In this document: piece after piece, positions 3,075-18,603 of the stretch
Layout: the number at the start of each line of letters is the position of its first letter
Numbering within the stretch: position 1 is the first letter of the stretch
Assembly (NCBI GenBank): GCA_965644265.1
Contig: OZ286463.1
Coordinates: forward strand, 109,740,001-109,804,000
Length of the DNA stretch: 64,000 nucleotides
From: Glycera tridactyla
Taxonomy: Eukaryota
Direction of reading: 5' to 3'
Translations under genes and position numbers: made by a program
The notes under the pieces: model-generated
Seen by the model: only the letters and a program-made list of their open reading frames with translations
Told to the model about the DNA's origin: nothing
The model's database searches: none

Positions 3075-3382
3075 ATGTACCATATCTTTTTGCACATGCC
3101 TGGAAGCGGGTGGAAAAATCACACTCTTCTTGAAAACATGGGGCAGCCAGACAATCTTAATTGTGCATATTCAAAGTTCAATACATGGGATGCAAACAGT
3201 ATATTCCACTCTAAAGATATATCACAGAAAACTTTTATAGAAGACCTTTACCATCGATTGGCAGACTTCATTCACCACATCCTCAAGTGAGACCACCACC
3301 AAGATTGTTACATAACTAAAGATGGCCAAGAATTTGTTTGGGAAGAATTCCAGGCATTCTTCAATTGTAAACACATGCAAAT
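3075..3382 (+). pseudogene. Decayed retroelement integrase-core relic, left half, interrupted by the gypsy insertion
   Basis: Translation ...AYSKF...ILK*DHHQDCYITKDGQEFVWEEFQAFF resembles the rve pattern DAHSKW...SDNGPQFVSEEFQAF; contains an in-frame stop. Confidence 0.4.
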
Positions 3383-5176
3383 TGTAACATTGCCGAGTAG
3401 GGTAGCGTTCACCATCAACATTTCACCATGGGTTAGTAAACAGGTAGGCAGTAAATGAAAACATTCACGTCAACTTGATTTAAATAGAAAATAACAAATA
3501 TTTATTCAACCTTAGACAGGAGAATTTATACGCAGTGTGACATGTAAAATGATGATTCAATTCAATTCAATAATTGTACAAGTATCATAGAAGGAGATTT
3601 TGCACCCCAGCTGATGACAATCTGGAATGATTCAGTAGATCTTGTCAATAACAACCACCTCTACAGGTAGACCATCACATAACACGGGCACTCAATAAAT
3701 AAAATCAGGGTTAGAAATCCATTGCAGGACCAATCACTTGCATGCCCTACCAATCAAGGACCAAAGGAGAATCTACCGGAGCAGGTAAAATTTGGGGTAA
3801 TTCCATGCAGGAATTTCCTTGAATGCCAATCTGGCCTCAATGACAAGGGGCTATTTCATATTTCTTGGCCTAAAATTTCCAATCAGATGCCAAATTTCCA
3901 AATGACTTTTCAGCATGAACTACAACCTTGCAGGTACATGATTACCAAACAGGAACCCTCACCTTAGGCTATAACCAGCCAAGTGGTTTAGATTCTGGAC
4001 AGCTATAAGGACACCAAGGACAGGACCATTCACTTTGGCAGCTAGAACCAGAATGAGGACTGCTGTCACTGGCCCATATTTATAGACTTGGCAATTCTGG
4101 CAGCCACGCCCCCAAACCGGTGCCTAAGCCAATCAACGCCATGGAAACTGGGTCAACATGGATGCCGCCAATTTTAATTCTGACAGCTACAAGTTGAATT
4201 TCCATCAATCTTCATCGTTTTTGACCTCAAAACTATGATTTATATAGCAAACTAGCCAGAAAATGCATTATTCTCAACATTTGGAGAAAGAAATGGCCAC
4301 AACAGTTGATAAAATGAGCGAAATAGGCGCCAAAGTGCAGGGGCAGAATTACATCTTGTCAGAATTGAAGTGGCAGAAATACCTAGCAGACAGCATGGCT
4401 TTCAATGTAAGTTTTACTCAATTTTACACCTTATTCATGCTAAACTCTGGGTGGGGTTTGGAGAAATACTAAAAAGCTATCTATTTTGAAGTATAAAAAC
4501 TGGTTTTGGAATTTATTTTGACGAATCTGTCACTTGAATCAGTGCCAAGATCAGCGATCGTGTCAGACTGGTTGTCAGCGTATCAGAACTGTCAGAATTC
4601 GAGCACAGGCACCAAATCACCCTGAAAACTGCTCAATTAACCCAAAATAAGCCCAAAACTCACATATTTCTGCACATTTCCTGATAAATAATTGATTTAG
4701 AGGTCCAAAACAAACAGGAAGTAGATTATTGGTTTGTTTACAATGATGCCTCCCGATCTTTGACAGGTAAAAACGATCTTTTCTAGGGCTAGAAAATGGG
4801 GTCTGACAGCCACAAATGTGCTTATTTCCACTCCAAACTGTGTGTTATTGATGATTCTCAGGCCCAACTACCCTATGAAGATGTGAATTGCTCATTTGAC
4901 AGCAGAATGCCCCTAAAAACAATCTATATCACTTGACATGTTTGCATACAGGGTGCTGTCAGATGAACAGTGAGCTAGTCAAAAGACACTCAGTGGAAAA
5001 CTAGGCCTGTCAGCCACAAACAGAGATCACCAGCAGCATATTGGCATTTTCATATAATGTGCTGTCAGAAAAGTGAAAACTAGTCACAAGACACTCAGCA
5101 GAAAACTAGGCCTGTCAGCACAAGCAGAGATCTCCAGCAGCATCATGCCAACAAAACAGCATGCTGGTTTGTTACA
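3383..5176 (-). repeat. 3' LTR (1794 bp)
   Basis: Same sequence as 16806-18599 in all segments compared by eye; preceded on the minus strand by a polypurine tract. Confidence 0.98.
3501..3506 (-). terminator. Candidate polyadenylation signal in the 3' LTR
   Basis: AATAAA on the minus strand, downstream of the predicted TSS-equivalent position (4054) and 118 nt from the LTR end. Confidence 0.5.
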
Positions 5177-5189
5177 CTCCTCCTTCCTT
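5177..5189 (-). other. Polypurine tract
   Basis: AAGGAAGGAGGAG on the minus strand, directly abutting the TG start of the 3' LTR. Confidence 0.92.
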
Positions 5190-5302
5190 AAGTTCTTCAC
5201 TCCGTGAAGACGAGAATAAAAATTATACTGGAGTTCCCGGCGGAACCATAATATAACAAAAATACTGAAATGGTATTTAACACCCACGTGGCCGGAAACG
5301 AA

Positions 5303-5670
5303 TTAGTCGCCGACACTGGCTACAACTCGGCAGTTCTCCCGACGATGGAATGTTAGTCGCCAAAACTGGCTCCGAGTTGACTCAAAAATACTCGTAATAG
5401 TCGCCAAAACTGGCTCAGAGATACTGCGATATCATGTATTAGTCACCAAAACTGGCTCAGAGATACTGCGATATCATGTATTAGTCACCAAAACTGGCTC
5501 AGAGATGCCGCGATATCATGTATTAGTCACCAAAACTGGCTCAGAGATGCCGCGATATCATGTATTAGTCACCAAAACTGGCTCAGAGATACTGCGACAT
5601 CATGTATCAGTCGCCACAACTGGCTCCAACTTGTCTAAAAATTATTCAGATAATCGGCAAAACTGGCTCA
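5303..5670. repeat. Tandem repeat, 42-bp unit (5 near-perfect plus about 4 diverged copies), upstream of the PPT
   Basis: Unit caaaactggctcagagatactgcgatatcatgtattagtcac at 5405, 5447, 5489, 5531 and 5573; the core tagtc(g/a)ccaaaactggct is kept in the flanking diverged units. Confidence 0.95.
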
Positions 5671-6070
5671 GATTTGGAGAAATACAGTGGAAAAAAGGAT
5701 AGGGTCACATATGTATAGTCACAGTTACCTGGGGTTACCACAAGGTAGACCCCTCACACCCAAACCAGATATTTTTGAACAGAATTCCTCTCCATGTACA
5801 TGTCAACCAGGAAGAATACATGTGAACATGCTGCAATCATTTCAATGGTAAATCCCGAAAACGCAATTTAAACCCGACCCGCTCAACATGAGGGGGCATT
5901 GCCACAACGATACATTTTACCAAAGCCCATTTAGATATTCACTACACTTCATGTCATCTGGAGTTGCACTGGTGACTTTGCACTGGAAATTGGGAGAAAT
6001 CTCACTCCATACAGCTGACTGACTGACTGTCTAACTGACAGACAGATGGACAGACGGACAGACACTTATG

Positions 6071-6074
<4 letters not shown>

Positions 6075-6156
<82 letters not shown>
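6075..6156. repeat. (CA)n microsatellite inside the retrotransposon
   Basis: About 41 CA units. Confidence 0.98.
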
Positions 6157-6158
<2 letters not shown>

Positions 6159-7055
6159 TGCATTTAATTCATCTTACTCATTTCCAGTTCACCAGGTGAC
6201 ATGCCCAAAACTCTTGAGTAAATGTAACCTCACTCAGTTGTCTCAATATTTACAAAGCATCAACTGAGTATGACTGTATATGTGAATTCTTTCTTGCATA
6301 CTCACATGCATGCACACACACATACACACACATTCACACAAATACCNNNNNNNNNNNNNNNNNNNNNNNNNNNNNNNNNNNNNNNNNNNNNNNNNNNNNN
6401 NNNNNNNNNNNNNNNNNNNNNNNNNNNNNNNNNNNNNNNNNNNNNNNNNNNNNNNNNNNNNNNNNNNNNNNNNNNNNNNNNNNNNNNNNNNNNACTTTAG
6501 TTGCCTTCTGGCAAATACATGGCACATCTAACCCTGTTTTACAAACAGCAAGGACGGAGATACGTGGCATTTTCACCATATCAAGCAGCATGGTGCAAAT
6601 AATTGAAAAGAGCAGGTTTTAAACCACTGCTGGTTGAACTTATATATACTGTACAATTGTAGTCAGTTGACTGAGGAGAGATCACAGAGCGACTTACAAA
6701 AAGAAAAAAAATGGCTACCATCACAGGAGAGCACAGCTCCTTACAGGAGCTAACTGAGATACCGGAGCTAATTGATGATGTACGTAAAAACAACAATCAT
6801 TGCCAAGCCCGTGAAACTTCTTATCATGCTTCATGAATAAAGCACCATATAAAACCTGTTTCTGGTTACACTTATTTGAACTAAGGGTAACAATTGAATT
6901 GTATGTATGATATACACTTGAAATATTTTACCGTTCATGAACAGCCATATTCAATCAATAACCCTGCTTTTGTTTTCTTTCTGTTTCAGGTATGACAACA
7001 GCCAGAATCAAGGAGACTCAGGCTCTAAGAAGAAATATTTATATAATAACATCAC

Positions 7056-7190
7056 ATTGAATCAGGATGACTCAATGGGGAATCGAACCCCGTCCACATG
7101 ACCAGCCCAAAAATAAGCCTTACCACACAGAAACCACACAGGAATATCCTCAGTCAAACTGAGGGGGGAATCGAACCCCAATACATGGCC
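7056..7190 (-). ncRNA. Two tRNA T-arm / B-box-like structured modules immediately 3' of ORF4
   Basis: GGGG-TTCGATT-CCCC at 7179-7165 and 7091-7077, each preceded by GGYCATG and followed directly by a hairpin of different sequence. Confidence 0.45.
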
Positions 7191-7207
7191 TCATACGGAC
7201 GGAAATA

Positions 7208-8440
7208 CTAATCTTCCTTGTATGACACCGGGATCTTCGCTTCCTGGAAAAGCTTGATTATCCAGGCTGTCTTCTGCTCACGAAACATCATCCTCAGGTT
7301 AGCTATCGCAGGGCTACCGGCCAACCTGCCTGCCTTCGACAGTTGGCTCACGTGCCGGTACATATGAGCCCGGGTATGTAGAAGCTCGATGTCTGCAGGG
7401 TCTTTCGGAACTGGCAAGGGCTTTGATCCCGGCAGCATGAGGAAATTATATCTTGCCACCAGAGGATGGGGGTCACAGGTAATACTGGGACGGCTGCCAT
7501 AGATCCGTTTCTCCAAGTCAACCATCAAAAGAAAGGCGGCCTGGTAGCGGCGGTCAGCGTCCATCTCCTCCCAGTCTTGCGGTGGCCAGTTTTCGGTACC
7601 ATCTTGATAAGGCAAGGTGATGAACCGCGTCTTGGATGAAAAGTCCCGCCTTGCTGGTGGAAGAAACGGGAGACAGCCCTCCTCCATGATCCTCCCTGCC
7701 GACACCGTGAACGGGACTGGGGGGCTAGGTGTAACTGGCCCTGTCGAAACTAGACAAGGGGTGACCGGCAAGGCAGGTGATGGATCACACGCCTCGATGA
7801 CTGGTTGCACTCGCGTGATTGGGGTAGGCCCGTAGGTCGGACCACCCATGGCCCCTTGCCACCCTGGTGAGTATGGCATTTCCACTGGCGTCTGGGACGG
7901 CGAATATGGTTGCTTCGATGGCGCTGGAGAGGCCCACAGATTGGCAGAGGTGTTGGCCGGGAGATTCTCCAACGGTGCCTTCCTTTTACGGATCACCGAC
8001 CTCTCCACGGCCAGCGCCCAAGTTGCCTGAATCTCCTCCATTGATGGGCCCTCCTCTTTCCGGCAGTTCGCCAAGACGAGCCGTACCCATGGCCGGGCTT
8101 CCACGTTGTCCTTCGGGCATGGCCGAGAGCACCAGGCATAATAGAGTGGCTTCGTGCTCAGGTAAAAACACGCTTTGCGTGTGAATGATGCCGGCGGAAT
8201 ATTCTCTGTGTCATGTTCAGCCATGGCATGGACTCTGAACCGGGCCACCTTGGTAAAGGTCTGGCGGCACCAGGGGCAGGCCACCTCACATGCCCGGTGC
8301 AACCCCTCAAGGTGGTTCAACTGATCCTTCATCGTTGCAAAGGAAACATCACACTCCTTCACCATGCACTTGATGCTTTGCAGCGTCTCCATTGCTGTAA
8401 TCAGAGATACCCCATGCATTAGCTTCATGAACTTCCCCAT
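7208..8440 (-). CDS. Accessory ORF4: 410-aa protein with two N-terminal C2H2-like fingers, a basic NLS, a Pro/Ser-rich linker and an unknown C-terminal globular domain
   Basis: CMVKECDVSFATMKDQLNHLEGLH (CX4CX12HX4H) and CPWCRQTFTKVARFRVHAMAEH (CX2CX12HX4H); RKRKAP; an intact 1233-nt ORF in a GC-rich segment flanked by AT-rich DNA. Confidence 0.85.
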   Translation of the reverse strand: MGKFMKLMHGVSLITAMETLQSIKCMVKECDVSFATMKDQLNHLEGLHRACEVACPWCRQTFTKVARFRVHAMAEHDTENIPPASFTRKACFYLSTKPLYYAWCSRPCPKDNVEARPWVRLVLANCRKEEGPSMEEIQATWALAVERSVIRKRKAPLENLPANTSANLWASPAPSKQPYSPSQTPVEMPYSPGWQGAMGGPTYGPTPITRVQPVIEACDPSPALPVTPCLVSTGPVTPSPPVPFTVSAGRIMEEGCLPFLPPARRDFSSKTRFITLPYQDGTENWPPQDWEEMDADRRYQAAFLLMVDLEKRIYGSRPSITCDPHPLVARYNFLMLPGSKPLPVPKDPADIELLHTRAHMYRHVSQLSKAGRLAGSPAIANLRMMFREQKTAWIIKLFQEAKIPVSYKED

Positions 8441-8547
8441 ACACTGGGTTAGTATGAACAAGAGGGGATGGCTACCATGCTTGGCATTTCAACTCAAAAC
8501 TTCAAGAAAAAAAAAAATGAAGAAAACTGAAGGAAATCAATCAGGCT

Positions 8548-9336
8548 CTACAGCTCTCCATCAGGATGCAGGTCCAGCTCCCAGTCACTCTCATCTTCAG
8601 CACCACTATCATGAAACACATCCTTGGCAGGAGCCCCAGCATCAAACTGCATGTCACCGAAGGATGGTCCTTTTGAGGCCTTCCATTTCCTTCTCGGATT
8701 CTGGGTGGCCACCGCCTCCTCAGGTGGGACACCTCCAACCGCCCCCAAAACAGGGGACGGCCTTGCTGGAGATCTCCCCGGAAGCGGTCCACCCAACCTG
8801 ATGACCCTTCTCTCGTCCTGCGGCAGAGCCGCTTCGAATTTGTGTAGATCGGCCCGCCTGACAGGCAGGTCCGATCCGACCGGGATGGTGACCCCATGAA
8901 CCTTGCGGTAGTGCCGCCGAATCTCATCCCGCCTATACTTAACGACGTCACAAGATACACATTCATAACTCTTGGCGGACGCTGGCCTAGCACAAACTGT
9001 GCGCAAATGTCGATTCAGGCCCTTTCGCTTGGCAAAGGATGCCCCACATTGTGAGCACTGGCATTCAGCCTCAGCTGCCACTTGATTCGGCTCATGGCCC
9101 ACCTCCACCGGGAAATCAAGGTTGGTGGATGTCCCCTTGTCCATATGTGTGGGGCGGTCTCCCTCAGGCCTCCGATACGGAGCAAATCTCCATGGAGTAG
9201 GGCTGTCCTTTACACCAGGACGATCGATCGAGACCTGGGGCTCTGACACATGTCTCCCTGCACGGGATCCATGGCCAGGCTCTACCCTCCGCTTTCCCTC
9301 AACCATACTGACTACGAAATTCTCCCAAGTCATCAT
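8548..9336 (-). CDS. Accessory ORF3: 262-aa protein with two zinc fingers (C2HC and C2H2) and an acidic C-terminus
   Basis: CSQCGASFAKRKGLNRHLRTVC and YECVSCDVVKYRRDEIRRHYRKVH; ATG lies 3 nt after the acceptor-like ttttctttccttgttacag (AG at 9341-9340); C-terminal EDESDWELDLHPDGEL. Confidence 0.8.
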   Translation of the reverse strand: MMTWENFVVSMVEGKRRVEPGHGSRAGRHVSEPQVSIDRPGVKDSPTPWRFAPYRRPEGDRPTHMDKGTSTNLDFPVEVGHEPNQVAAEAECQCSQCGASFAKRKGLNRHLRTVCARPASAKSYECVSCDVVKYRRDEIRRHYRKVHGVTIPVGSDLPVRRADLHKFEAALPQDERRVIRLGGPLPGRSPARPSPVLGAVGGVPPEEAVATQNPRRKWKASKGPSFGDMQFDAGAPAKDVFHDSGAEDESDWELDLHPDGEL

Positions 9337-10396
9337 GAACTGTAACAAGGAAAGAAAATATGATGATAGACCTCAGTCTAAACTATACTTCTTTGGATAT
9401 CTACAAAATTGTCAACAATTTATCGGCGATGGCATCTCCTATATTCAAAGGAACATTTTCCCACCCATATATACACAGGACATCCCGGGTGGATGGTGCC
9501 AGGCCAGGCAAAGTATAAAAGTCATCTGTCAAGAGAGACAAGCAGAGATACAGCAGCATTTAATTTCTGACTCCATTCCAAAATCATGGCTGAGATGAAT
9601 CTACTGATTTCACCCCACTCACAAACCCTCAACCATACAAGAACTGGACACTGTTCTACCTCTGCACCCACGAGACTCCCTTTTCACCCTGACATGACAG
9701 CTCTACCGCACCCTGAACTGAGAAAGACAATCCATTACGTGTAAAGTATCCACTTTACCATGCTGATAGGGTGATCAGTCCTATCTGAAAACTGGGGCCC
9801 CAGACCTTACACCTTGCAGGGTTTTTTTTAGTTCCTTTTCCCATGTCACTAGGCTGGATGCAGAAGGCCAACTTGCACCTTCCTATTCAGAACCACCAAA
9901 CCCATGTACCAGTTCTACAAGACTTTGACTGAAACTGACTCATATGATAATTGTTTAATTAATTTATTTATTGTCCTTATTATTATTATTATTATTATCA
10001 CTATTATGGCAGGACATCCAGAACATCCCGAATTAGCAACATCAAGCAGCTATGGATACTCTATGCTGGAGTCCAACAAATGTAAACAAGATAAGGAAAC
10101 ATAAAATACAATGTCTAAAATAATTTCCTTTCCTGCTATAGCACCATTGCATGGGGAGCACTTTTGAGAAGTGTGGAGACATGTATTTCGCCTAATAAAA
10201 CGAATATATTTTTTTTTTTCTATATTTCCTTCAACATGACATAATCCTAGGTACAAGGATGGAACTTCAGCCTCAATCTTTTTCTTTTATTCCTATGATC
10301 TGAAATCATTTGTTTCCACTCAATGCCTCATATATTAAGGTCCCATTCATATTGGCATGCAGCCTGAGATCACAAAAATGCTAGTTCCCAAAAGTG

Positions 10397-10456
10397 CCAC
10401 CAGATGGCACCCTCAACCTTCTCTCCCTGGAGCACCCTATTCACACTAGATGGCAG
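10397..10456 (+). promoter_or_regulatory. Two tandem CTCF-like motifs inside the retrotransposon
   Basis: CCACCAGATGGCAC (10397-10410) fully matches CCASYAGRKGGCRS; ACACTAGATGGCAG (10443-10456) has one mismatch. Confidence 0.5.
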
Positions 10457-11431
10457 GGCTGCATAATGGGCAGGGTTACCCAGGGCAACTAAAGAGTGGG
10501 GGACCATGCCACCCTGCAGTGTGATTTTTCACAGTCCCTTTTTCAACATGTTAAAATACACTTTATGGGCATCATTTTCAAGTTTTAATGCCTGCCAAGA
10601 GTTCCAGCAGTGCCCAAGAAGAATCATGTCACTCCAAAGCAAGCAAAATTCACTAGATGCTGGATAATCTGGGTAAGTTCATTCCTCCTTCTCCCTATTT
10701 CAGCACATGCTTCCCCAGCCCAGGGAAAGCACATGGTTCTTCAATCCTGTGGAAGCTGGTATCAGTATTCACAGGAGCTGCTTCATTTGCCTATTGGAAT
10801 AGCATGCCACTAGATTTTACCATTTTATTACAGGGCTGTCTGCAGAATTTACTTTAGCAATACTGGGCAAATGGACAGAAAAACATGACAATAACCTGCC
10901 TATCAAGAAAATCAACCTGCCCATAAAAATTGACCTGCCCATCCAAAAAATCAACCGGCCCATTTATGATCAATTTTCACCTGCCCACCATGAACAGGTG
11001 ACCTGCTCTGGGCAGGTTTACATGTATCTCATCTCACCCTGGGCCATCAAATTGAGCTTTGAAAACAAATGTTTTTTTTTTTTATGTACACATGAGCTCA
11101 ACAATCTAAAAGGTGAATGATTGGCTACCTTCAATATATTCCACAGTGAATCTCTAATCATGGGGGCACTTTTCTTAAATTATCTATCAATTATTACGGG
11201 GTCAATTCACAGAAATATACAAATAAAAGGAACTCTAATGACAGGAGGGCCATCCTCCTTCCTTATTCATTAATGTGGTCTTTCCACAGCTGGAGTTGGT
11301 GTACAACTCCATTTCTTTTCAGTATGCTGGAAATAGGCCTGTCACCCTTGAATGTTTTTTTTAGCTAACTGAACATGACAAGAACTGCTGCTCATCTCAG
11401 TCAACCTCTCTCTTCAACTGCATGACTGTAT

Positions 11432-14400
11432 CTATGCCTGTTCCCCGCACTGAACAGGTCGAAACCAGGTTGGCCGGTTACGCCCATGGTACGCCTTCAA
11501 GCGATCAACATGATAAACACGAGGCTGAGCGCATCGACCTGCCTGGACCCTGTATGTGACTGCATCCAAACACTCAATCACAACCTGTGGCCCCTTCCAA
11601 GGAGAAGTCAACTTGGAACAAACTCCAACTTTTCTTGTTGGGCGTAGAACCCACACAGCATCTCCAACCTGGAAAGTGCGCATTCGAGCATTGAGATCGT
11701 AATAGCGACGTTGATACACAGCACTTTGCTTCAACTGCCCCCTGGCTTCATCATGTACATTCCTCAACTTTTCCTGCAACTTTGCAAGATAATCATCACT
11801 TGTCACAGCTTCATCCTCCTCATCAGGCTGAGCAATTACAGCCTCCAGTGGCATTGTAATCTGGCGCCCATACATCATTTCATTAGGAGTTTTCCCAGTA
11901 GATGACTGAACTGAAGCGCGATATGCCATGAGCACCAGAGGCAGGTACTCATCCCAGGTATCTTGATGTTTCTCAGCATACATAGTGAGCATTGCGCCAA
12001 GAGTGCGGTTGAATCTCTCAATATTCCCATTCGACTGGGGCCTTGCAACAGAAGTCTTCGTCTTGTCAATATGGAGGTACTTGCAGACTTCCTTGAATAA
12101 GGCAGAGTCGAAGTTGGTACCACGATCACTATGAAGTTGTCGAGGTGCCCCATGCCGAGCAACAAATTCTTCCACAAAGACTCTGGCCACAGTGGCAGCT
12201 TCCTGATTTGGAAGTGCGTAGGCCTCAGTGTACTTGGTGAACTGGTCCCCTACCACCAACACAAAGCGATTCTGGCGCTTAGTGACTGGAAGAGGACCCA
12301 TGATGTCAAGGGCCACACGCTCCATTGGACTACCCACCAGGTATTGCTGGAGAGGTGCTTTGGTTTTAGACAGTGGTGGCTTCCTGGCAACACATCTGTC
12401 ACATGTACGGCAATAGTTGCTCACAGTCTTGCTCATTCCTGGCCAGTAGAAGTGCATCTTCACTCTCTCCAGGGTTTTCTCGCCTCCCAGATGACCACCA
12501 CTTGGAATATCATGATAGAATTTGAGCAAACTCTCCTGGCGGGACACCGGAACAATAAGTTGAAAAGTACCCTCGCCACCGCAGTCATCAACCCACCGGC
12601 GATAGAGCATGCCGTCACAGACTTGCAAACGATCCCAGTGACGCCATAATGTCTTGAATGCACTTGAACTTGCAGAGATCTCTGACCATCCAGGTTGTGG
12701 CTTCCCTTCCTCCAGAGCAGACATGATTGGACCGATATTACTGTCAGCTAACTGGTCGAGTCGTATGTCCGCAGGTTCCCATCCCTCGAGCCATGCTTGG
12801 TTATGTTTTAGGCTACTCCGAGATGACACTTGCCCGCGTGTGATTGCACGAACTGACACATGACGCCGCTCACATTGGTTTCTCTGCACCTTGAGTAGGA
12901 CTCTCACTGCTCTCACTGCAGCCTGGGCCTTGGCTTCACTCTCAAGATGTTCCGTGTCACTGTTGGTGTGTGCCGTCGCTGGCACCTCGATCCCCAGGAC
13001 TGCATTCTCATCACAATTATCTGCTTCCTCAGGCAAACCCAACCGTGCACCCTCTGCGTCAGGTACAAGTGACATTGCTCCGGGAATGTTTGCAGTTTGT
13101 TGTGAACTGCTGGAATCTGCCTCCATCACTGGAGCACCTTCCATTGCAGACACATTCAACTCATTTTGTCTCTCACATGATCTGCACGGGCACCGGGACA
13201 ATGCATCCGCATTGCGGTGCTTGGTACCTGCCCGGTGGACAACTGTAAGGTCGTAAGTAGCCAACTCCTCCAGCCATCTTGCTGTCTGGCCCGTTGGACA
13301 CTTGAGATTTCTCATCCAGCTTACTGCTGCATTATCCGTCCTGAGCAAGACTGGTTGGCCATACAGGTATGGTCTGAACTTTCTCAGTGCACATACCACA
13401 GCCAATAACTCTTTCCGGGTCACACAGTAATTCTGCTCCTCCCTTGTCATGGCCTTACTGTGATAGGCTATCACTCGCTCCCTCTCTTCCTGGACTTGAG
13501 ACAACACCGCTCCTATGGCTTTGTCACTTGCATCTGTGTCGAGAATGTATTCCTTGCCAGGAATAGGGTAAGCCACAATAGGTGCAGTAATCAGCTTCTC
13601 GCGGAGAGTAACAAAAGCCTCCTGACACTCTTCTGTCCATTCAAATGGCCGATTCTTCTCTGTAGCTTTATGTAGAGGTCTTGCCACATGCGCAAAATCA
13701 GCGACCAGACGGCGATAATACCCACAAAGACCTACAAATGCGCGTATTTCACGGGTACTGGTGGGCACAGGCCAGTTTTTCACTGCCTCAATCTTTGATG
13801 GATCTGTCCGAATCCCATCTGGAGTCACGATATGACCGAGGAAAAGGACCTGTTGCTTGAAGAAATGACATTTTGATGGTTTGAGTTTCAGACCAGCTCC
13901 TGCCAGTCGCTGGAATACTCTCTCAAGTCTCTGCAGACATTCTGAGATAGTACTGCCATAGGAAATTATATCATCAACAAAAAGCAAGCACTCTTCAAAT
14001 TGGAGGCCACGCAGCACATTTTCCATCAAGCGTTCAAATGTCGCAGGGCTATTCGTCAAACCAAATGGCATGGTTTTAAAGTGATAAAGCCCGAAGCTTG
14101 AAGCGAATGCAGTCTTTTCTTTGTCCTCTTCAGCAACTGGAATTTGCCAGAACCCAGACTGGACATCCATACTTGAGTAGAACTTCGCCCCCTGCAAGGC
14201 GTCCAGACAGTCGTCAATACGAGGGAGAGGGTAGGCGTCTTTTTGCGTGACATCGTTCAAGGCCCGAAAGTCGATGCAAAATCTCGTAGCACCACATTTC
14301 TTCTTCACAAGCACGACAGGACTCGCCCACGGACTAGTGGAGGGCTCAATAATCCCATACTTCAACATCTTGTCAATTTCATCTCGCTCGATTTCACGCT

Positions 14401-15529
14401 TTCCGATTGGTTGTCGGCGAGGTCTTTGCTTGTTTGGAGCTGCATTGCCAGTATTGATCCTGTGCTTGACAAGATGTGTGCACCCTAAATCACCAGGCCC
14501 TTTTGAGAAAACATGCTGATAATCATTGAGCAAAATAATGAAGGCCCCTTTTTCACTATCATTGAGGAGCTCAGCACTTGTCAAGAACAGTTCTTTCAGA
14601 TGGTCAGGTACTTGTTCAATGAGAGGCTTTCCTTCCACCACCTTCATAGCTGCAACTCTCCTGACAGGAGGGGAGTCTGTCTCATAGTATGATTCACAGG
14701 TACCAATTGTGGTGCCCGCACGCAGCTTCATAGGCTTCTCATAGGGGTTTATCAGCAATACACTTGAATCCGCCTCCTGTGGGGCTACTATGCCTGGTAT
14801 AAGTATCACATTGTGGTAGCTCAGCAAATTCACATCAGGCTCCACCAGCCCATTTTCAGCCAACCTTGTCGCTCGAGGGATAGTGACCTTGACCTTGACA
14901 CCACTTTCAGGTGGCAAGGTGACTTGATCTCTGACCCTCACCTGACACACCACAGCACTCTTACTCCCCAGCCAGCAGGGGATATCTTGATATTTGGTGG
15001 TCAGGATGGCTCTTCTGTAGTCCAGCTTATATACATGCTGTGTGATGAAATCATTTCCCAGGATAGCATCTTGCACAATATTGGCCACAATGACAGGATA
15101 TCTGTATGTTACATCCCCCAGTCGGATTAATATTGTCATCTCTCCATGAGTGGTTAGCCTGGTCCCATCAGCTGTCTGTAGTCCAAATCTAGGCTCATTC
15201 AATTTCAAGTTTGGGTTTTTCCTCATCATACCCTCAAATGTTGTCTCAGATACGAGTGTTACAGTTGAGCCAGTATCAAGCAGAAAATCCACAGGGAGGC
15301 CCTGAACATGGCCAGTCACAAAGAAGCCATTGTCATATACTGGACCATCGGCAACCTGCCCGATTCTTTTGTTTTCACAGCACTGATTTCCATCACTCCC
15401 ATGTGTTTCACTCTCTTTGATTTTTAACGTGGGCGGTTCCTGAGGGAGGTCCCTTCGATCAGGCCCTTTTTCACACCCCTGGGCTGGGCCTACTGAACCA
15501 GAGGACGCTCGTTTCCCTGTTGAGAATTC
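11432..15529 (-). CDS. pol: Pol polyprotein (protease, reverse transcriptase, RNase H, integrase), in the -1 frame relative to gag
   Basis: The frame is open from 15529 (70 codons upstream of the track's start) and overlaps the gag end. Motifs: LLDTGS (PR); YPLPRIDD, FGLTNSPATF, LFVDD (RT); DTDAS (RH); HX6H...CX2C, ALDIMGP/HSDRG/NIERFN DDE and SPWKGP (IN). No internal stops. Confidence 0.97.
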   Translation of the reverse strand, partial: EFSTGKRASSGSVGPAQGCEKGPDRRDLPQEPPTLKIKESETHGSDGNQCCENKRIGQVADGPVYDNGFFVTGHVQGLPVDFLLDTGSTVTLVSETTFEGMMRKNPNLKLNEPRFGLQTADGTRLTTHGEMTILIRLGDVTYRYPVIVANIVQDAILGNDFITQHVYKLDYRRAILTTKYQDIPCWLGSKSAVVCQVRVRDQVTLPPESGVKVKVTIPRATRLAENGLVEPDVNLLSYHNVILIPGIVAPQEADSSVLLINPYEKPMKLRAGTTIGTCESYYETDSPPVRRVAAMKVVEGKPLIEQVPDHLKELFLTSAELLNDSEKGAFIILLNDYQHVFSKGPGDLGCTHLVKHRINTGNAAPNKQRPRRQPIGKREIERDEIDKMLKYGIIEPSTSPWASPVVLVKKKCGATRFCIDFRALNDVTQKDAYPLPRIDDCLDALQGAKFYSSMDVQSGFWQIPVAEEDKEKTAFASSFGLYHFKTMPFGLTNSPATFERLMENVLRGLQFEECLLFVDDIISYGSTISECLQRLERVFQRLAGAGLKLKPSKCHFFKQQVLFLGHIVTPDGIRTDPSKIEAVKNWPVPTSTREIRAFVGLCGYYRRLVADFAHVARPLHKATEKNRPFEWTEECQEAFVTLREKLITAPIVAYPIPGKEYILDTDASDKAIGAVLSQVQEERERVIAYHSKAMTREEQNYCVTRKELLAVVCALRKFRPYLYGQPVLLRTDNAAVSWMRNLKCPTGQTARWLEELATYDLTVVHRAGTKHRNADALSRCPCRSCERQNELNVSAMEGAPVMEADSSSSQQTANIPGAMSLVPDAEGARLGLPEEADNCDENAVLGIEVPATAHTNSDTEHLESEAKAQAAVRAVRVLLKVQRNQCERRHVSVRAITRGQVSSRSSLKHNQAWLEGWEPADIRLDQLADSNIGPIMSALEEGKPQPGWSEISASSSAFKTLWRHWDRLQVCDGMLYRRWVDDCGGEGTFQLIVPVSRQESLLKFYHDIPSGGHLGGEKTLERVKMHFYWPGMSKTVSNYCRTCDRCVARKPPLSKTKAPLQQYLVGSPMERVALDIMGPLPVTKRQNRFVLVVGDQFTKYTEAYALPNQEAATVARVFVEEFVARHGAPRQLHSDRGTNFDSALFKEVCKYLHIDKTKTSVARPQSNGNIERFNRTLGAMLTMYAEKHQDTWDEYLPLVLMAYRASVQSSTGKTPNEMMYGRQITMPLEAVIAQPDEEDEAVTSDDYLAKLQEKLRNVHDEARGQLKQSAVYQRRYYDLNARMRTFQVGDAVWVLRPTRKVGVCSKLTSPWKGPQVVIECLDAVTYRVQAGRCAQPRVYHVDRLKAYHGRNRPTWFRPVQCGEQA
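15461..15517 (-). other. -1 programmed ribosomal frameshift signal (slippery heptamer plus H-type pseudoknot)
   Basis: G_GGA_AAC in the gag frame (15517-15511), a 6-nt spacer, stem 1 CCUCUGG/CCAGGGG and stem 2 AGGCCC/GGGCCU; pol is in the -1 frame. Confidence 0.85.
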
Positions 15530-16575
15530 TCAACATTAGCTCTGCAGTACTTCTTGATGTGACCATTGCCTCCACAGCCATAGCAGAGTGGACCCTGTGG
15601 ACAGCTATACTTCTGGTGATCATCACCACCACACCTCCAGCAGGTGACCTCATTTCCTTTAGGACCATAGAATTTCCTGTCAGAATTACCAGGAGCCTTC
15701 TGTGTGGAGACAGCTTTCTCCAAGTTTTCCAGTTTTTTCAGGATCTCACCTTGTGTTGTGGATTCAGTTGATTGATTAACAGCCCGAACTGGCCGCTTTT
15801 TGTCCCCACACAGTGCCTCATACTGTTCCACAATCGCCACCGCTTCATAAAGAGTTTCACATTTACTCTTGATGCATTCATATTTCAGCTCAAATGGTAT
15901 GGTCTTGTAGAACTGCTTCAGTGCAAGAACCTCCTGGGCACGAGAGCTCAAATCGTTGTAAGCACGAATAGCCATCCTGTGTAGATCATCTGCCAGGGCG
16001 GAAACAGTCTCGCCAGACTGGCGACGCCTGCCTTCCAGCTGTGCAGCCCAGACTTCACGCTGTCGCATGGTTCCAAAACGCCGGGTAAGGGCAGCCACCA
16101 GGTGTTGGTAGCTTCTTTTCTCATTTGGAGCCAAACTCATGTAGTAGATTCTCGCTCGGCCTTTCAAGCTGGCTGAGAGAACAAGCTTCTTCATGCGTGG
16201 ATCCCATTCACTCAACTCTGCACAATCTTCGAAGTGTGACAGGTAGGATTCCCAGTCCTGTTCTCCATTATAACTTTCAGGCTTCATTGATACGCGCTTA
16301 CAGGGAGGGCGCCTCCTCCTAGCAGGAGGAGTTCTCCCAGCATGGATTGTATTTGCAGGAGCCTCGTCTTCATCATCACCCTCCTCTTCGCCATCGTCAT
16401 CATTCTCTGACTCTGACTCAGGAGGGATCTCATCATCTATCAAGTCTACAGCGCCCAACGGAGCATTGAAACCATCCCCAGAGCTGGGGTCACGGGTCTC
16501 TAGCTCATCATTTCCTTTCCCAGGGACACCCATCAGGGACTTTCTGAATGTAACATCAGGATCATATTCCGCCAT
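15490..16575 (-). CDS. gag: Gag (361 aa from MAEYDP): acidic/basic N-terminus, retrotransposon capsid-like core, two CCHC zinc knuckles
   Basis: Open ORF; KPESYNGEQDWESYLSHFE...LKGRARIYY capsid-like region; CWRCGGDDHQKYSC and CYGCGGNGHIKKYC (CX2CX4HX4C twice). First ATG at 16575; the track's TTG start at 16638 is upstream. Confidence 0.95.
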   Translation of the reverse strand: MAEYDPDVTFRKSLMGVPGKGNDELETRDPSSGDGFNAPLGAVDLIDDEIPPESESENDDDGEEEGDDEDEAPANTIHAGRTPPARRRRPPCKRVSMKPESYNGEQDWESYLSHFEDCAELSEWDPRMKKLVLSASLKGRARIYYMSLAPNEKRSYQHLVAALTRRFGTMRQREVWAAQLEGRRRQSGETVSALADDLHRMAIRAYNDLSSRAQEVLALKQFYKTIPFELKYECIKSKCETLYEAVAIVEQYEALCGDKKRPVRAVNQSTESTTQGEILKKLENLEKAVSTQKAPGNSDRKFYGPKGNEVTCWRCGGDDHQKYSCPQGPLCYGCGGNGHIKKYCRANVENSQQGNERPLVQ

Positions 16576-16786
16576 CTTTATTTGTACTGCCAACGACTGG
16601 AATAACCTAAACTGACTGATGCTGAATGTAAACCCCAAGTGCTGGATAAGTGATGCAAGAAGAGAGAAAGAAAGTAAGAAAAGAAAAATTAAATTTGAAT
16701 CGCAATCACAGGAAATTATTGGCCAAAGTTCAAAATATCTTCTGAGATAAGGTTCGTATCATGGGATACCAAATTTAATTTTTAGT

Positions 16787-16804
16787 ATCCCACCGCTGCC
16801 ACCA
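16787..16804 (-). other. Primer-binding site complementary to the 3' end of tRNA-Leu
   Basis: Minus strand TGGTGGCAGCGGTGGGAT lies 1 nt after the 5' LTR. It is the complement of ATCCCACCGCTGCCA+CCA, the 3' end of metazoan tRNA-Leu (AAG/TAG type) as I recall it. Confidence 0.9.
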
Positions 16805-16805
16805 T

Positions 16806-18599
16806 TGTAACATTGCCGAGTAGGGTAGCGTTCACCATCAACATTTCACCATGGGTTAGTAAACAGGTAGGCAGTAAATGAAAACATTCACGTCAACTTG
16901 ATTTAAATAGAAAATAACAAATATTTATTCAACCTTAGACAGGAGAATTTATACGCAGTGTGACATGTAAAATGATGATTCAATTCAATTCAATAATTGT
17001 ACAAGTATCATAGAAGGAGATTTTGCACCCCAGCTGATGACAATCTGGAATGATTCAGTAGATCTTGTCAATAACAACCACCTCTACAGGTAGACCATCA
17101 CATAACACGGGCACTCAATAAATAAAATCAGGGTTAGAAATCCATTGCAGGACCAATCACTTGCATGCCCTACCAATCAAGGACCAAAGGAGAATCTACC
17201 GGAGCAGGTAAAATTTGGGGTAATTCCATGCAGGAATTTCCTTGAATGCCAATCTGGCCTCAATGACAAGGGGCTATTTCATATTTCTTGGCCTAAAATT
17301 TCCAATCAGATGCCAAATTTCCAAATGACTTTTCAGCATGAACTACAACCTTGCAGGTACATGATTACCAAACAGGAACCCTCACCTTAGGCTATAACCA
17401 GCCAAGTGGTTTAGATTCTGGACAGCTATAAGGACACCAAGGACAGGACCATTCACTTTGGCAGCTAGAACCAGAATGAGGACTGCTGTCACTGGCCCAT
17501 ATTTATAGACTTGGCAATTCTGGCAGCCACGCCCCCAAACCGGTGCCTAAGCCAATCAACGCCATGGAAACTGGGTCAACATGGATGCCGCCAATTTTAA
17601 TTCTGACAGCTACAAGTTGAATTTCCATCAATCTTCATCGTTTTTGACCTCAAAACTATGATTTATATAGCAAACTAGCCAGAAAATGCATTATTCTCAA
17701 CATTTGGAGAAAGAAATGGCCACAACAGTTGATAAAATGAGCGAAATAGGCGCCAAAGTGCAGGGGCAGAATTACATCTTGTCAGAATTGAAGTGGCAGA
17801 AATACCTAGCAGACAGCATGGCTTTCAATGTAAGTTTTACTCAATTTTACACCTTATTCATGCTAAACTCTGGGTGGGGTTTGGAGAAATACTAAAAAGC
17901 TATCTATTTTGAAGTATAAAAACTGGTTTTGGAATTTATTTTGACGAATCTGTCACTTGAATCAGTGCCAAGATCAGCGATCGTGTCAGACTGGTTGTCA
18001 GCGTATCAGAACTGTCAGAATTCGAGCACAGGCACCAAATCACCCTGAAAACTGCTCAATTAACCCAAAATAAGCCCAAAACTCACATATTTCTGCACAT
18101 TTCCTGATAAATAATTGATTTAGAGGTCCAAAACAAACAGGAAGTAGATTATTGGTTTGTTTACAATGATGCCTCCCGATCTTTGACAGGTAAAAACGAT
18201 CTTTTCTAGGGCTAGAAAATGGGGTCTGACAGCCACAAATGTGCTTATTTCCACTCCAAACTGTGTGTTATTGATGATTCTCAGGCCCAACTACCCTATG
18301 AAGATGTGAATTGCTCATTTGACAGCAGAATGCCCCTAAAAACAATCTATATCACTTGACATGTTTGCATACAGGGTGCTGTCAGATGAACAGTGAGCTA
18401 GTCAAAAGACACTCAGTGGAAAACTAGGCCTGTCAGCCACAAACAGAGATCACCAGCAGCATATTGGCATTTTCATATAATGTGCTGTCAGAAAAGTGAA
18501 AACTAGTCACAAGACACTCAGCAGAAAACTAGGCCTGTCAGCACAAGCAGAGATCTCCAGCAGCATCATGCCAACAAAACAGCATGCTGGTTTGTTACA
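16806..18599 (-). repeat. 5' LTR (1794 bp)
   Basis: Direct repeat of 3383-5176 at a constant offset of 13423; the ORF track gives identical peptides at 3722/17145 and 4263/17686; TG...CA ends; the PBS follows on the minus strand. Confidence 0.98.
17446..17556 (-). promoter_or_regulatory. LTR core promoter: CCAAT, GC/KLF box, TATA, Inr, DPE
   Basis: CCAAT at 17552-17556; GGGGGCGTGGC at 17536-17526; TATAAATA at 17507-17500; Inr TCATTC with +1 at 17477 (30 nt from the TATA); GGTCC at +28 to +32 fits the DPE consensus RGWYV. Confidence 0.7.
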
Positions 18600-18603
18600 A
18601 AAT

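Follow-up and report, generated by a model that had tools for sequence, protein, structure and literature searches.

The 64,000-nucleotide stretch of Glycera tridactyla contig OZ286463.1 analyzed here (positions 109,740,001 to 109,804,000 of the forward strand, assembly GCA_965644265.1; hereafter the window) carries on its minus strand a complete Ty3/gypsy long terminal repeat (LTR) retrotransposon, in which all four open reading frames (ORFs) are open. Besides gag and pol, these are ORF3 and ORF4, two genes located between pol and the 3′ LTR, each encoding a protein with a pair of C2H2 zinc fingers. An initial annotation of this DNA had described two intact sense-strand ORFs of 262 and 410 amino acids (aa) at this position, and had regarded them as a two-gene zinc-finger module occupying the place of env in a gypsy element. 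The anatomy of the element and our tests of the ORFs agree with this description, both ORFs being located on the minus strand. All features by which a Ty3/gypsy element is recognized were found, namely LTRs with TG..CA ends plus a target-site duplication (TSD), a primer-binding site (PBS) and a polypurine tract (PPT), a gag gene with a CCHC knuckle, and a pol gene with protease (PR), reverse transcriptase (RT), RNaseH and integrase (IN) in this order. The element is intact and recently inserted. The coordinates of its features are listed in Table 1.

The ORF4 protein consists of a C2H2 pair (8213-8368), a helical subdomain that extends to about position 7988, a proline-rich linker and a C-terminal domain (7211-7720). 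The homologues of ORF4 start at M17 (ATG 8392), and the finger ligands C9/C14/H27/H32 and C39/C42/H55/H60 (M17 numbering) are retained in all those of 72 relatives that have a residue in the column. When compared with the PDB, the fingers of the ORF4 family matched CTCF, ZBTB17 and similar chains with E-values down to 1.6e-6. The AlphaFold2 model has a mean predicted local distance difference test score (pLDDT) of 80.7; its N-terminal domain (residues 1-135) and its alpha/beta C-terminal domain (residues ~225-394) are modeled with confidence, and the proline-rich linker that joins them is disordered. The linker is hypervariable among the relatives. Within the C-terminal domain, the residues G239, P242, R249, W269-P-P, W274, L318, L320 and G322 are common to 90-100% of the relatives, and the signature of the family in this region (G..P..PPARR, WPPxxW and YNFLxLPG) is also displayed by ORF4 of the window. 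This domain corresponds to no Pfam family and has no sequence match in the PDB, and a Foldseek search of the PDB and BFVD with the ORF4 model returned nothing at E ≤ 0.001 and weak C2H2 matches only. Judged from its sequence and its predicted model, the C-terminal domain of ORF4 is apparently new and represents a fold family without a match.

The fingers of ORF3 (8896-9057) have the ligands C94/C97/H110/C115 and C126/C129/H142/H147, which are invariant in three homologues, and a three-sequence profile of ORF3 matched classical C2H2 pairs of the PDB at residues ~80-150 only (best E-value 8e-12). In the AlphaFold2 model of ORF3 (mean pLDDT 48.6) the fingers fold with values of 70-86 and the remainder is disordered. 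The C-terminus (8551-8640) forms an acidic tail with a DSG...ES...DW.LDL pattern that is conserved in all three homologues; we take this tail to be reminiscent of an acidic activation tail or a phosphodegron. The zinc-finger pairs that had been noticed in both proteins are thus borne out by the conserved ligands and the PDB matches, the Pfam C2H2 matches of ORF3 and ORF4 lying under the curated cut-off. The basic motifs resembling nuclear localization signals (NLSs) are likewise present, as KRR, KRK and RRK in ORF3, where the basic patch is conserved, and as RKRK in ORF4. A Pfam scan of ORF3, ORF4 and the 72 relatives yielded zinc-finger families almost exclusively, the exceptions being matches to aspartyl protease, FOXP-CC and Zmiz1_N in one member each. 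Neither protein contains a hydrophobic segment (maximum Kyte-Doolittle 19-residue means of 0.52 in ORF3 and 0.93 in ORF4), which agrees with the earlier view that both lack a transmembrane segment, and therefore neither of them is an envelope protein. No match of ORF3 or ORF4 to an env family or fold was found in Pfam or the PDB, or, for the ORF4 model, with Foldseek in the PDB and BFVD.

Word-indexed protein searches gave just three matches (one relative of ORF4 and two of ORF3), and therefore the family becomes visible only with an exhaustive profile search. With ORF4, such a search retrieved 103 proteins, most of which matched in both the N-terminal and the C-terminal stretches. Wherever long DNA was retrieved for a relative (such loci are designated by L numbers), the ORF4-like gene was always located 3′ of pol and on the same strand. 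It follows gag-pol in the metagenome contigs L005, L006 and L008, on a Mercenaria mercenaria chromosome (L007), where it lies within LTRs that are 99.7% identical, and in Dreissena polymorpha (L017), where the flanking LTRs are 100% identical; in Mytilus edulis (L016) it follows pol. The clusters of the ORF4 family are multi-copy in Dreissena and Mytilus. All named members are bivalve (Mercenaria, Dreissena, three Mytilus species and Potamilus), and their database names are only ‘uncharacterized’, ‘hypothetical’ or ‘C2H2-type domain-containing’, none of them being characterized. In pol, these elements and that of the window are identical at about 50% of the positions, and the nearest pol (73%) comes from the same metagenome as locus L001. 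Among the relatives of pol, some bear Pinctada names and some are contaminants in bins of lucinid symbionts. Taken alone, these relatives would point to a bivalve as the probable host. From these comparisons, the ORF4 family seems to be the regular third gene, located after pol and unrelated to env, of a gypsy clade that is found across bivalves. The co-occurrence with the pol clade between LTRs, which the initial annotation had proposed as a check, was thus observed in L007 and L017, with L016 carrying the gene after pol.

ORF3-like loci are seven in number; they were detected by a pattern scan of metagenome contigs, all belong to assembly JAAUYI01, and are 33-63% identical to ORF3. Contig L001 (the same as L002) carries an ORF3-like and an ORF4-like gene in the order of the window. 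In L015 the end of pol is joined to the start of an ORF3-like gene, and in L013 the end of an ORF3-like gene is joined to a full-length ORF4-like gene including the C-terminal domain; the order pol, ORF3, ORF4 therefore holds in several diverged sublineages. Decayed copies were also encountered, since the ORF3-like gene of L010 has two frame changes, L014 is a deleted remnant, and ORF4 of L001 is devoid of the C-terminal domain. No ORF3 was found in the elements of Mercenaria, Dreissena and Mytilus or in L005, L006 and L008, which indicates that ORF3 is a later addition. The finger pair of ORF3 has the layout of that of the ORF4 family and aligns with it over 57 columns (hhalign probability 93.8%, E-value 1.8e-7), and it directly matches the fingers of the ORF4-like protein of Dreissena. 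On the strength of these alignments, ORF3 may stem from a duplication of the finger module of ORF4.

At the divergence of these relatives, ratios of non-synonymous to synonymous substitution rates (dN/dS) were not computable because the synonymous sites are saturated in every pair. The proportions of differences were 0.68-0.84 at synonymous sites (pS) versus 0.27-0.48 at non-synonymous sites (pN) in the pairs compared, and all seven compared ORFs are open; the sole finite estimate was obtained for ORF3 (dN 0.385 versus dS 1.75). That open frames and motifs are retained at this depth indicates purifying selection on the accessory genes. Compared with the metagenome lineage, the identities are 73% for pol, 55% for ORF3 and 47% for ORF4, and compared with the Mercenaria element they amount to about 50% for pol and about 28% for ORF4. 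Judged by these identities, the accessory genes diverge faster than pol.

The initial annotation had also proposed that both genes are expressed by splicing, from a donor at 17385 to acceptors at 9341-9340 and 8501-8500. The AG at 9341-9340 is present after a pyrimidine tract and is conserved, TTACAG or TACAG being located 2-4 nucleotides (nt) 5′ of the ORF3-like start in L001, L010, L012 and L015, with the sequence farther upstream unalignable. For ORF4 the AG at 8501-8500 is present as well, but the conserved site is the one at 8396-8395, and if the former were used, the ORF4 start would be preceded by a short ORF. The ORF4 relatives have TTACAG, TTTCAG, TTCTAG or TTGTAG 1-4 nt 5′ of their starts. 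When one fixed rule was applied (a YAG acceptor 1-4 nt 5′ of the ATG), it was satisfied by 13 of the 16 starts, against a background of 4.4% for all ATGs of these sequences; L017 has TTTACAG, yet it fails this rule on the pyrimidine count. ORF3 and ORF4 each lie entirely 3′ of their own acceptor. The donor-like site at 17385 is present as described, and it represents the best consensus match between the TATA box (TATAAA, 17507-17502) and early gag. The Dreissena element (L017) has AAA/GTGAGT 74 nt past its TATA box. As diverged relatives also have an acceptor right next to the start codon, spliced expression is indirectly supported, and this part of the proposal stands with a different acceptor for ORF4. 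We thus consider with fair confidence, on the pattern of these sites, that ORF3 and ORF4 would be translated from spliced subgenomic mRNAs.

Table 1. Features of the retrotransposon in the 64,000-nt window (positions of the window; all on the minus strand).
Feature	Position	Strand	Remarks
Ty3/gypsy LTR retrotransposon	3383..18599	-	complete, 15,217 bp; all four ORFs open
TSD, ATTT	upstream copy 18600..18603; downstream copy 3379-3382	-	read from sequence
5′ LTR	16806..18599	-	1794 bp, TGTAAC...GTTACA; 100% identity to 3′ LTR
Candidate splice donor AAG/GTGAGG	17381..17388	-	G of GT at 17385; consensus match, ~92 nt past the transcription start site predicted from the TATA box
PBS	16787..16804	-	TGG start, 1 nt past 5′ LTR; stretch GGTGGCAGCGGTGGGATA also after the LTR end in L006
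gag	15490..16575	-	ATG 16575; Pfam: CCHC knuckle, capsid-like region with weak PNMA/SCAN matches
pol	11432..15529	-	PR-RT-RNaseH-IN; Pfam domains in order, E down to 1e-34
pol-ORF3 non-coding spacer	9349..11431	-	holds GGGCAGGT array and two conserved blocks
Acceptor-like AG of ORF3	9340..9341	-	after pyrimidine tract (TTACAG), 3 nt 5′ of ORF3 ATG; kept in relatives
ORF3	8548..9336	-	262 aa, ATG 9336; intact ORF between pol end 11432 and 3′ LTR
Acceptor-like AG of ORF4	8395..8396	-	TTACAG, 2 nt 5′ of ORF4 ATG 8392; common to relatives
ORF4	7208..8440	-	410 aa from ATG 8440, 394 aa from ATG 8392 (M17); intact ORF
42-bp tandem array	5353..5626	-	6.5 copies, between ORF4 and 3′ LTR; from sequence
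PPT	5177..5188	-	AAGGAAGGAGGAG, adjoining 3′ LTR; from sequence
3′ LTR	3383..5176	-	1794 bp; 100% identity to 5′ LTR

The direct repeats that BLAST reports for this element (3381-5176 and 16804-18599) are 1796 bp long and 100% identical; they exceed the 1794-bp LTRs because 2 nt of the spacer plus PBS happen to be identical to 2 nt of the TSD. The last 40 nt of gag are also covered by the pol frame, which differs from that of gag; this corresponds to a frameshift layout. A masked run of N (6347-6493) is located inside the element, and no second copy of the element or of its genes was found within the window. The PBS stretch of the window recurs at positions 57-78 of L006, and the elements of Mercenaria (L007, 3587-3616) and Dreissena (L017, 4175-4204) have in common a different PBS starting with TGGTGTCAGAA; at least two primers are therefore used in the clade. 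ARAGORN called no tRNA that would identify the primer. The 5′ LTR also contains AATAAA (16929-16924) and seven copies of CTGACAG in its U3 region; these seven copies per LTR (17609-18541 and 4186-5118) compare with about 0.2 expected. An excess of TGACAG was also seen in the Dreissena LTR (5 versus 0.4 expected) and 3′ of the ORF4-like gene of L013 (9 versus 1.8), and no such enrichment was seen in Mercenaria. By their counts, these repeats form a candidate cluster of factor-binding motifs. An assignment to the Troyka superfamily was rejected, as Troyka elements have CG..CG ends and a 3-bp TSD (PMC12440569) versus the TG..CA ends and 4-bp TSD observed here. Elsewhere in the window, an inverted pair of 122 nt with 84% identity (1790-1911 and 47759-47880) probably represents copies of a short interspersed repeat, and (CA)n runs are dispersed across the window.

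The GGGCAGGT array of the pol-ORF3 spacer (10893-10963 and nearby) comprises four sense copies and one inverted copy within about 130 nt (10893-11020). It is the sense-strand reading of the ACCTGCCC array, which had been suggested as a nearby target of the two proteins together with the 42-bp array. Both arrays were rejected as conserved targets, since they have no sequence counterpart in the relatives and only the position of an array recurs; indeed, non-homologous arrays are found at the place of the 42-bp array in L007, L017 and L008. Two other blocks of the spacer (9755-9814 and 9666-9694) match L001 at 82% and 93% of the nucleotides versus about 70% in the coding parts. The core of the conserved sequence, TGATCACCCT, is part of a near-palindrome and is also found in L012; it occurs only once in the element and is therefore not a repeated target site. 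RNA folding gave no significant structure for the conserved block 5′ of ORF3 (z = -0.65), and Rfam had no match anywhere in the window. The spacer is strongly depleted of CpG (observed/expected ratio of 0.13 versus 0.47-0.67 in the ORFs), and it is about three times as long as its counterpart in L015. Just 3′ of the ORF4 stop, two GGTTCGATTCC motifs that resemble a tRNA T-arm are located on the minus strand (7079-7089 and 7167-7177), with no tRNA called there by ARAGORN. These motifs may represent a piece derived from a short interspersed element (SINE). The same motif is also present in L007, outside the element.

The arrangement described here has parallels in several known systems. As in the errantiviruses and other env-carrying Ty3/gypsy elements (Drosophila gypsy; PMC13524379), a third gene that is conserved in a clade lies between pol and the 3′ LTR and is probably expressed from a spliced subgenomic RNA. 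Unlike in the errantiviruses, the products have no signal peptide, transmembrane segment or match to env, so that the third ORF is not the membrane glycoprotein by which errantiviruses are defined; the products carry C2H2 fingers, and a subclade has a pair of these genes. The element shows the hallmark of LTR elements with extra ORFs, since it contains a conserved one 3′ of pol and 5′ of the 3′ LTR. In this respect it resembles the plant elements Ogre, Retand and Grande, which have conserved extra ORFs in a long internal region after pol (PMC7264820, PMC11963269). Some products of these plant ORFs of unknown role are nuclear, and some of the elements are spliced (PMC7264820, PMC11963269). The present element differs from them in its animal host, in the sense orientation of its genes and in their zinc-finger architecture, and there is no sequence relation. 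Another likeness is to the LTR elements of bdelloid rotifers (PMC5408684), which are also animal elements with non-env genes at the ORF3 position, spliced messages being their typical mode of expression. In rotifers, ORF3 codes for enzymes or env-like proteins (GDSL esterase and DEDDy exonuclease; dUTPase domains occur in three lineages), whereas no zinc-finger ORF3 is mentioned in that study (PMC5408684). In our Pfam scans of ORF3, ORF4 and the 72 relatives, no homology to the extra ORFs described so far (GDSL esterase, DEDDy exonuclease, dUTPase, transposase-28, SMC-like) was detected.

As an idea only, ORF3 and ORF4 could be likened to the regulators of complex retroviruses, which are small nuclear proteins encoded 3′ of pol, alternatively spliced, and acting on their own expression. 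They would differ from these by the absence of kinship in sequence or fold and by belonging to a retrotransposon without env: no match named Tat, Tax, Tas or Rev appeared in the searches of PDB sequences, of the PDB with Foldseek, or of BFVD. Similarly, nothing named VANC was among the search results for ORF3 and ORF4, no search having been aimed at VANC with a comparator sequence. By sequence, the classical C2H2 pair resembles that of host transcription factors (CTCF, ZBTB7A, ZBTB17 and Ikaros in the PDB), and this likeness to DNA-binding fingers suggests that the fingers of ORF3 and ORF4 would bind DNA in a sequence-specific manner. Unlike the host factors, the proteins of the element have two fingers only and no Pfam effector domain outside of them, and they are multi-copy inside a mobile element. 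Extra ORFs in LTR retroelements are thus already known from plants and rotifers, and the zinc-finger ORF4-like family is apparently undescribed. In the literature, with Repbase and GyDB outside the coverage, we found no description of the ORF4-like family, of a conserved C2H2 protein with a new C-terminal domain encoded by the elements of an entire clade, or of a second finger protein in a subclade. Neither ORFs nor zinc fingers occur anywhere in the text of a survey of mollusc LTR elements (PMC6238403), and a survey of metazoan env genes (PMC13524379) is silent on zinc-finger and third ORFs.

The explanation that in our view best accounts for these observations, and to which we assign a probability of about 0.55, is that the element belongs to a gypsy clade of bivalves in which ORF4 is the third gene and ORF3 an addition in a subclade, both being expressed by splicing and encoding nuclear regulators. 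In this scheme, a donor in the LTR or leader, for which the site at 17385 is the candidate, would be joined to the acceptors at 9341-9340 and 8396-8395, giving rise to spliced subgenomic mRNAs. The ORF3 and ORF4 proteins would then move into the nucleus, where they would bind nucleic acid to the advantage of the element, this being the least certain step. The most likely target would be the DNA of the element or its chromatin, where binding would promote transcription of the element. ORF3, with its fingers, basic patch and acidic-hydrophobic tail, would be a minimal activator, and the C-terminal domain of ORF4 would contact a partner from the host or the element. That both proteins are nuclear and favor transcription by binding element DNA or chromatin remains a tentative suggestion. 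Similarly, we regard it as possible, but doubtful, that there is a bivalve-wide ‘complex’ gypsy clade with alternatively spliced, sequence-specific zinc-finger regulators of its own, of which ORF4 would be ancient and ORF3 later, and which would act on element DNA or chromatin in transcription or anti-silencing.

Several observations speak against parts of this explanation. ORF3 is known from two sources only, namely the window and one metagenome assembly, and the similarity between the fingers of ORF3 and ORF4 is within the range of any two C2H2 pairs. Such pairs can, moreover, bind RNA or protein too. The Mercenaria LTR (L007) has no donor of comparable quality, and no spliced junction was seen in two short-read contigs that cover the ORF4-like gene of a relative (L018 and L019), both of which are colinear with the unspliced element. 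In L005 (7389-7420) the codons of the first finger come immediately after an acceptor-like CAG, without an ATG; its start codon might derive from an upstream exon, and the details of expression therefore vary among lineages. Alternatively, the same genes could be expressed without splicing of the LTR transcript, from a promoter inside the pol-ORF3 spacer. The conserved non-coding blocks in the 2-kb spacer 5′ of ORF3 and the lack of conservation of the donor in L007 are in keeping with such a promoter, and the plant element Grande is cited in PMC7264820 as transcribing an accessory gene from its own promoter. By itself, however, an internal promoter does not explain why YAG abuts the ATG of both genes across distant lineages, and we consider it unlikely.

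With respect to the origin and function of the two proteins, the initial annotation had itself named a one-off host capture as the finding that would speak against the module. ORF3 and ORF4 would then be host genes or fragments present in this copy only and useless to the element. The GC content of both genes (0.57 versus 0.49-0.50 in gag and pol) and the long non-coding spacers that flank them could point in this direction, but the gene order is repeated in diverged copies and across four bivalve genera, and the ORFs are open despite saturated synonymous sites. The module is thus conserved within its lineage, which makes such a capture extremely improbable. A role in integration, in which the fingers would anchor the pre-integration complex at particular DNA or chromatin sites, with integrase or capsid bound, or nuclear import aided, by the C-terminal domain, is unlikely in our view. 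It would fit the DNA-binding type of the fingers and the NLS-like motifs, the lack of a Pfam chromodomain match in the pol of the window, and the clade-wide conservation of the C-terminal domain, as expected for the partner of a conserved element protein; yet it leaves the acidic tail of ORF3 unexplained, and the single copy, with its TSD ATTT, gives no sign of a preferred insertion site. Decidedly unlikely is a function in counter-defense, by which the proteins would bind or remove a component of host silencing, with ORF3 as an adaptor acting through its acidic DSG...S tail. Although the faster divergence of the accessory genes, the variability of the ORF4 linker and the invariance of the tail motif in three homologues are compatible with this possibility, the tail would be a putative degron at most, and no homology to a known antagonist was found in PDB sequences or with Foldseek in the PDB and BFVD. 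Finally, ORF3 or ORF4 might bind RNA and aid the export or packaging of unspliced RNA if the element is spliced. Splicing is likely, the proteins have arginine- and lysine-rich patches, and the non-coding blocks 5′ of ORF3 are conserved above the level of the coding parts, but the lack of significant RNA structure and of Rfam matches, together with DNA binders as the closest matches of the fingers, makes this improbable.

The extra genes known from LTR retrotransposons are mostly env-like, enzymatic or of unknown type, and C2H2 proteins are usually pictured as host repressors of transposons. If ORF3 and ORF4 are indeed regulators of the element, this picture would be inverted. Should the element or its chromatin be under their control, the proteins would provide a tractable example of a transposon with transcription-factor-like proteins of its own. 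In that case, dozens of gene models called ‘uncharacterized C2H2 protein’ in Mytilus, Dreissena, Mercenaria and Potamilus would also find an explanation as genes of transposons, with a bearing on the annotation of bivalve genomes and on the question why gypsy elements thrive in molluscs.

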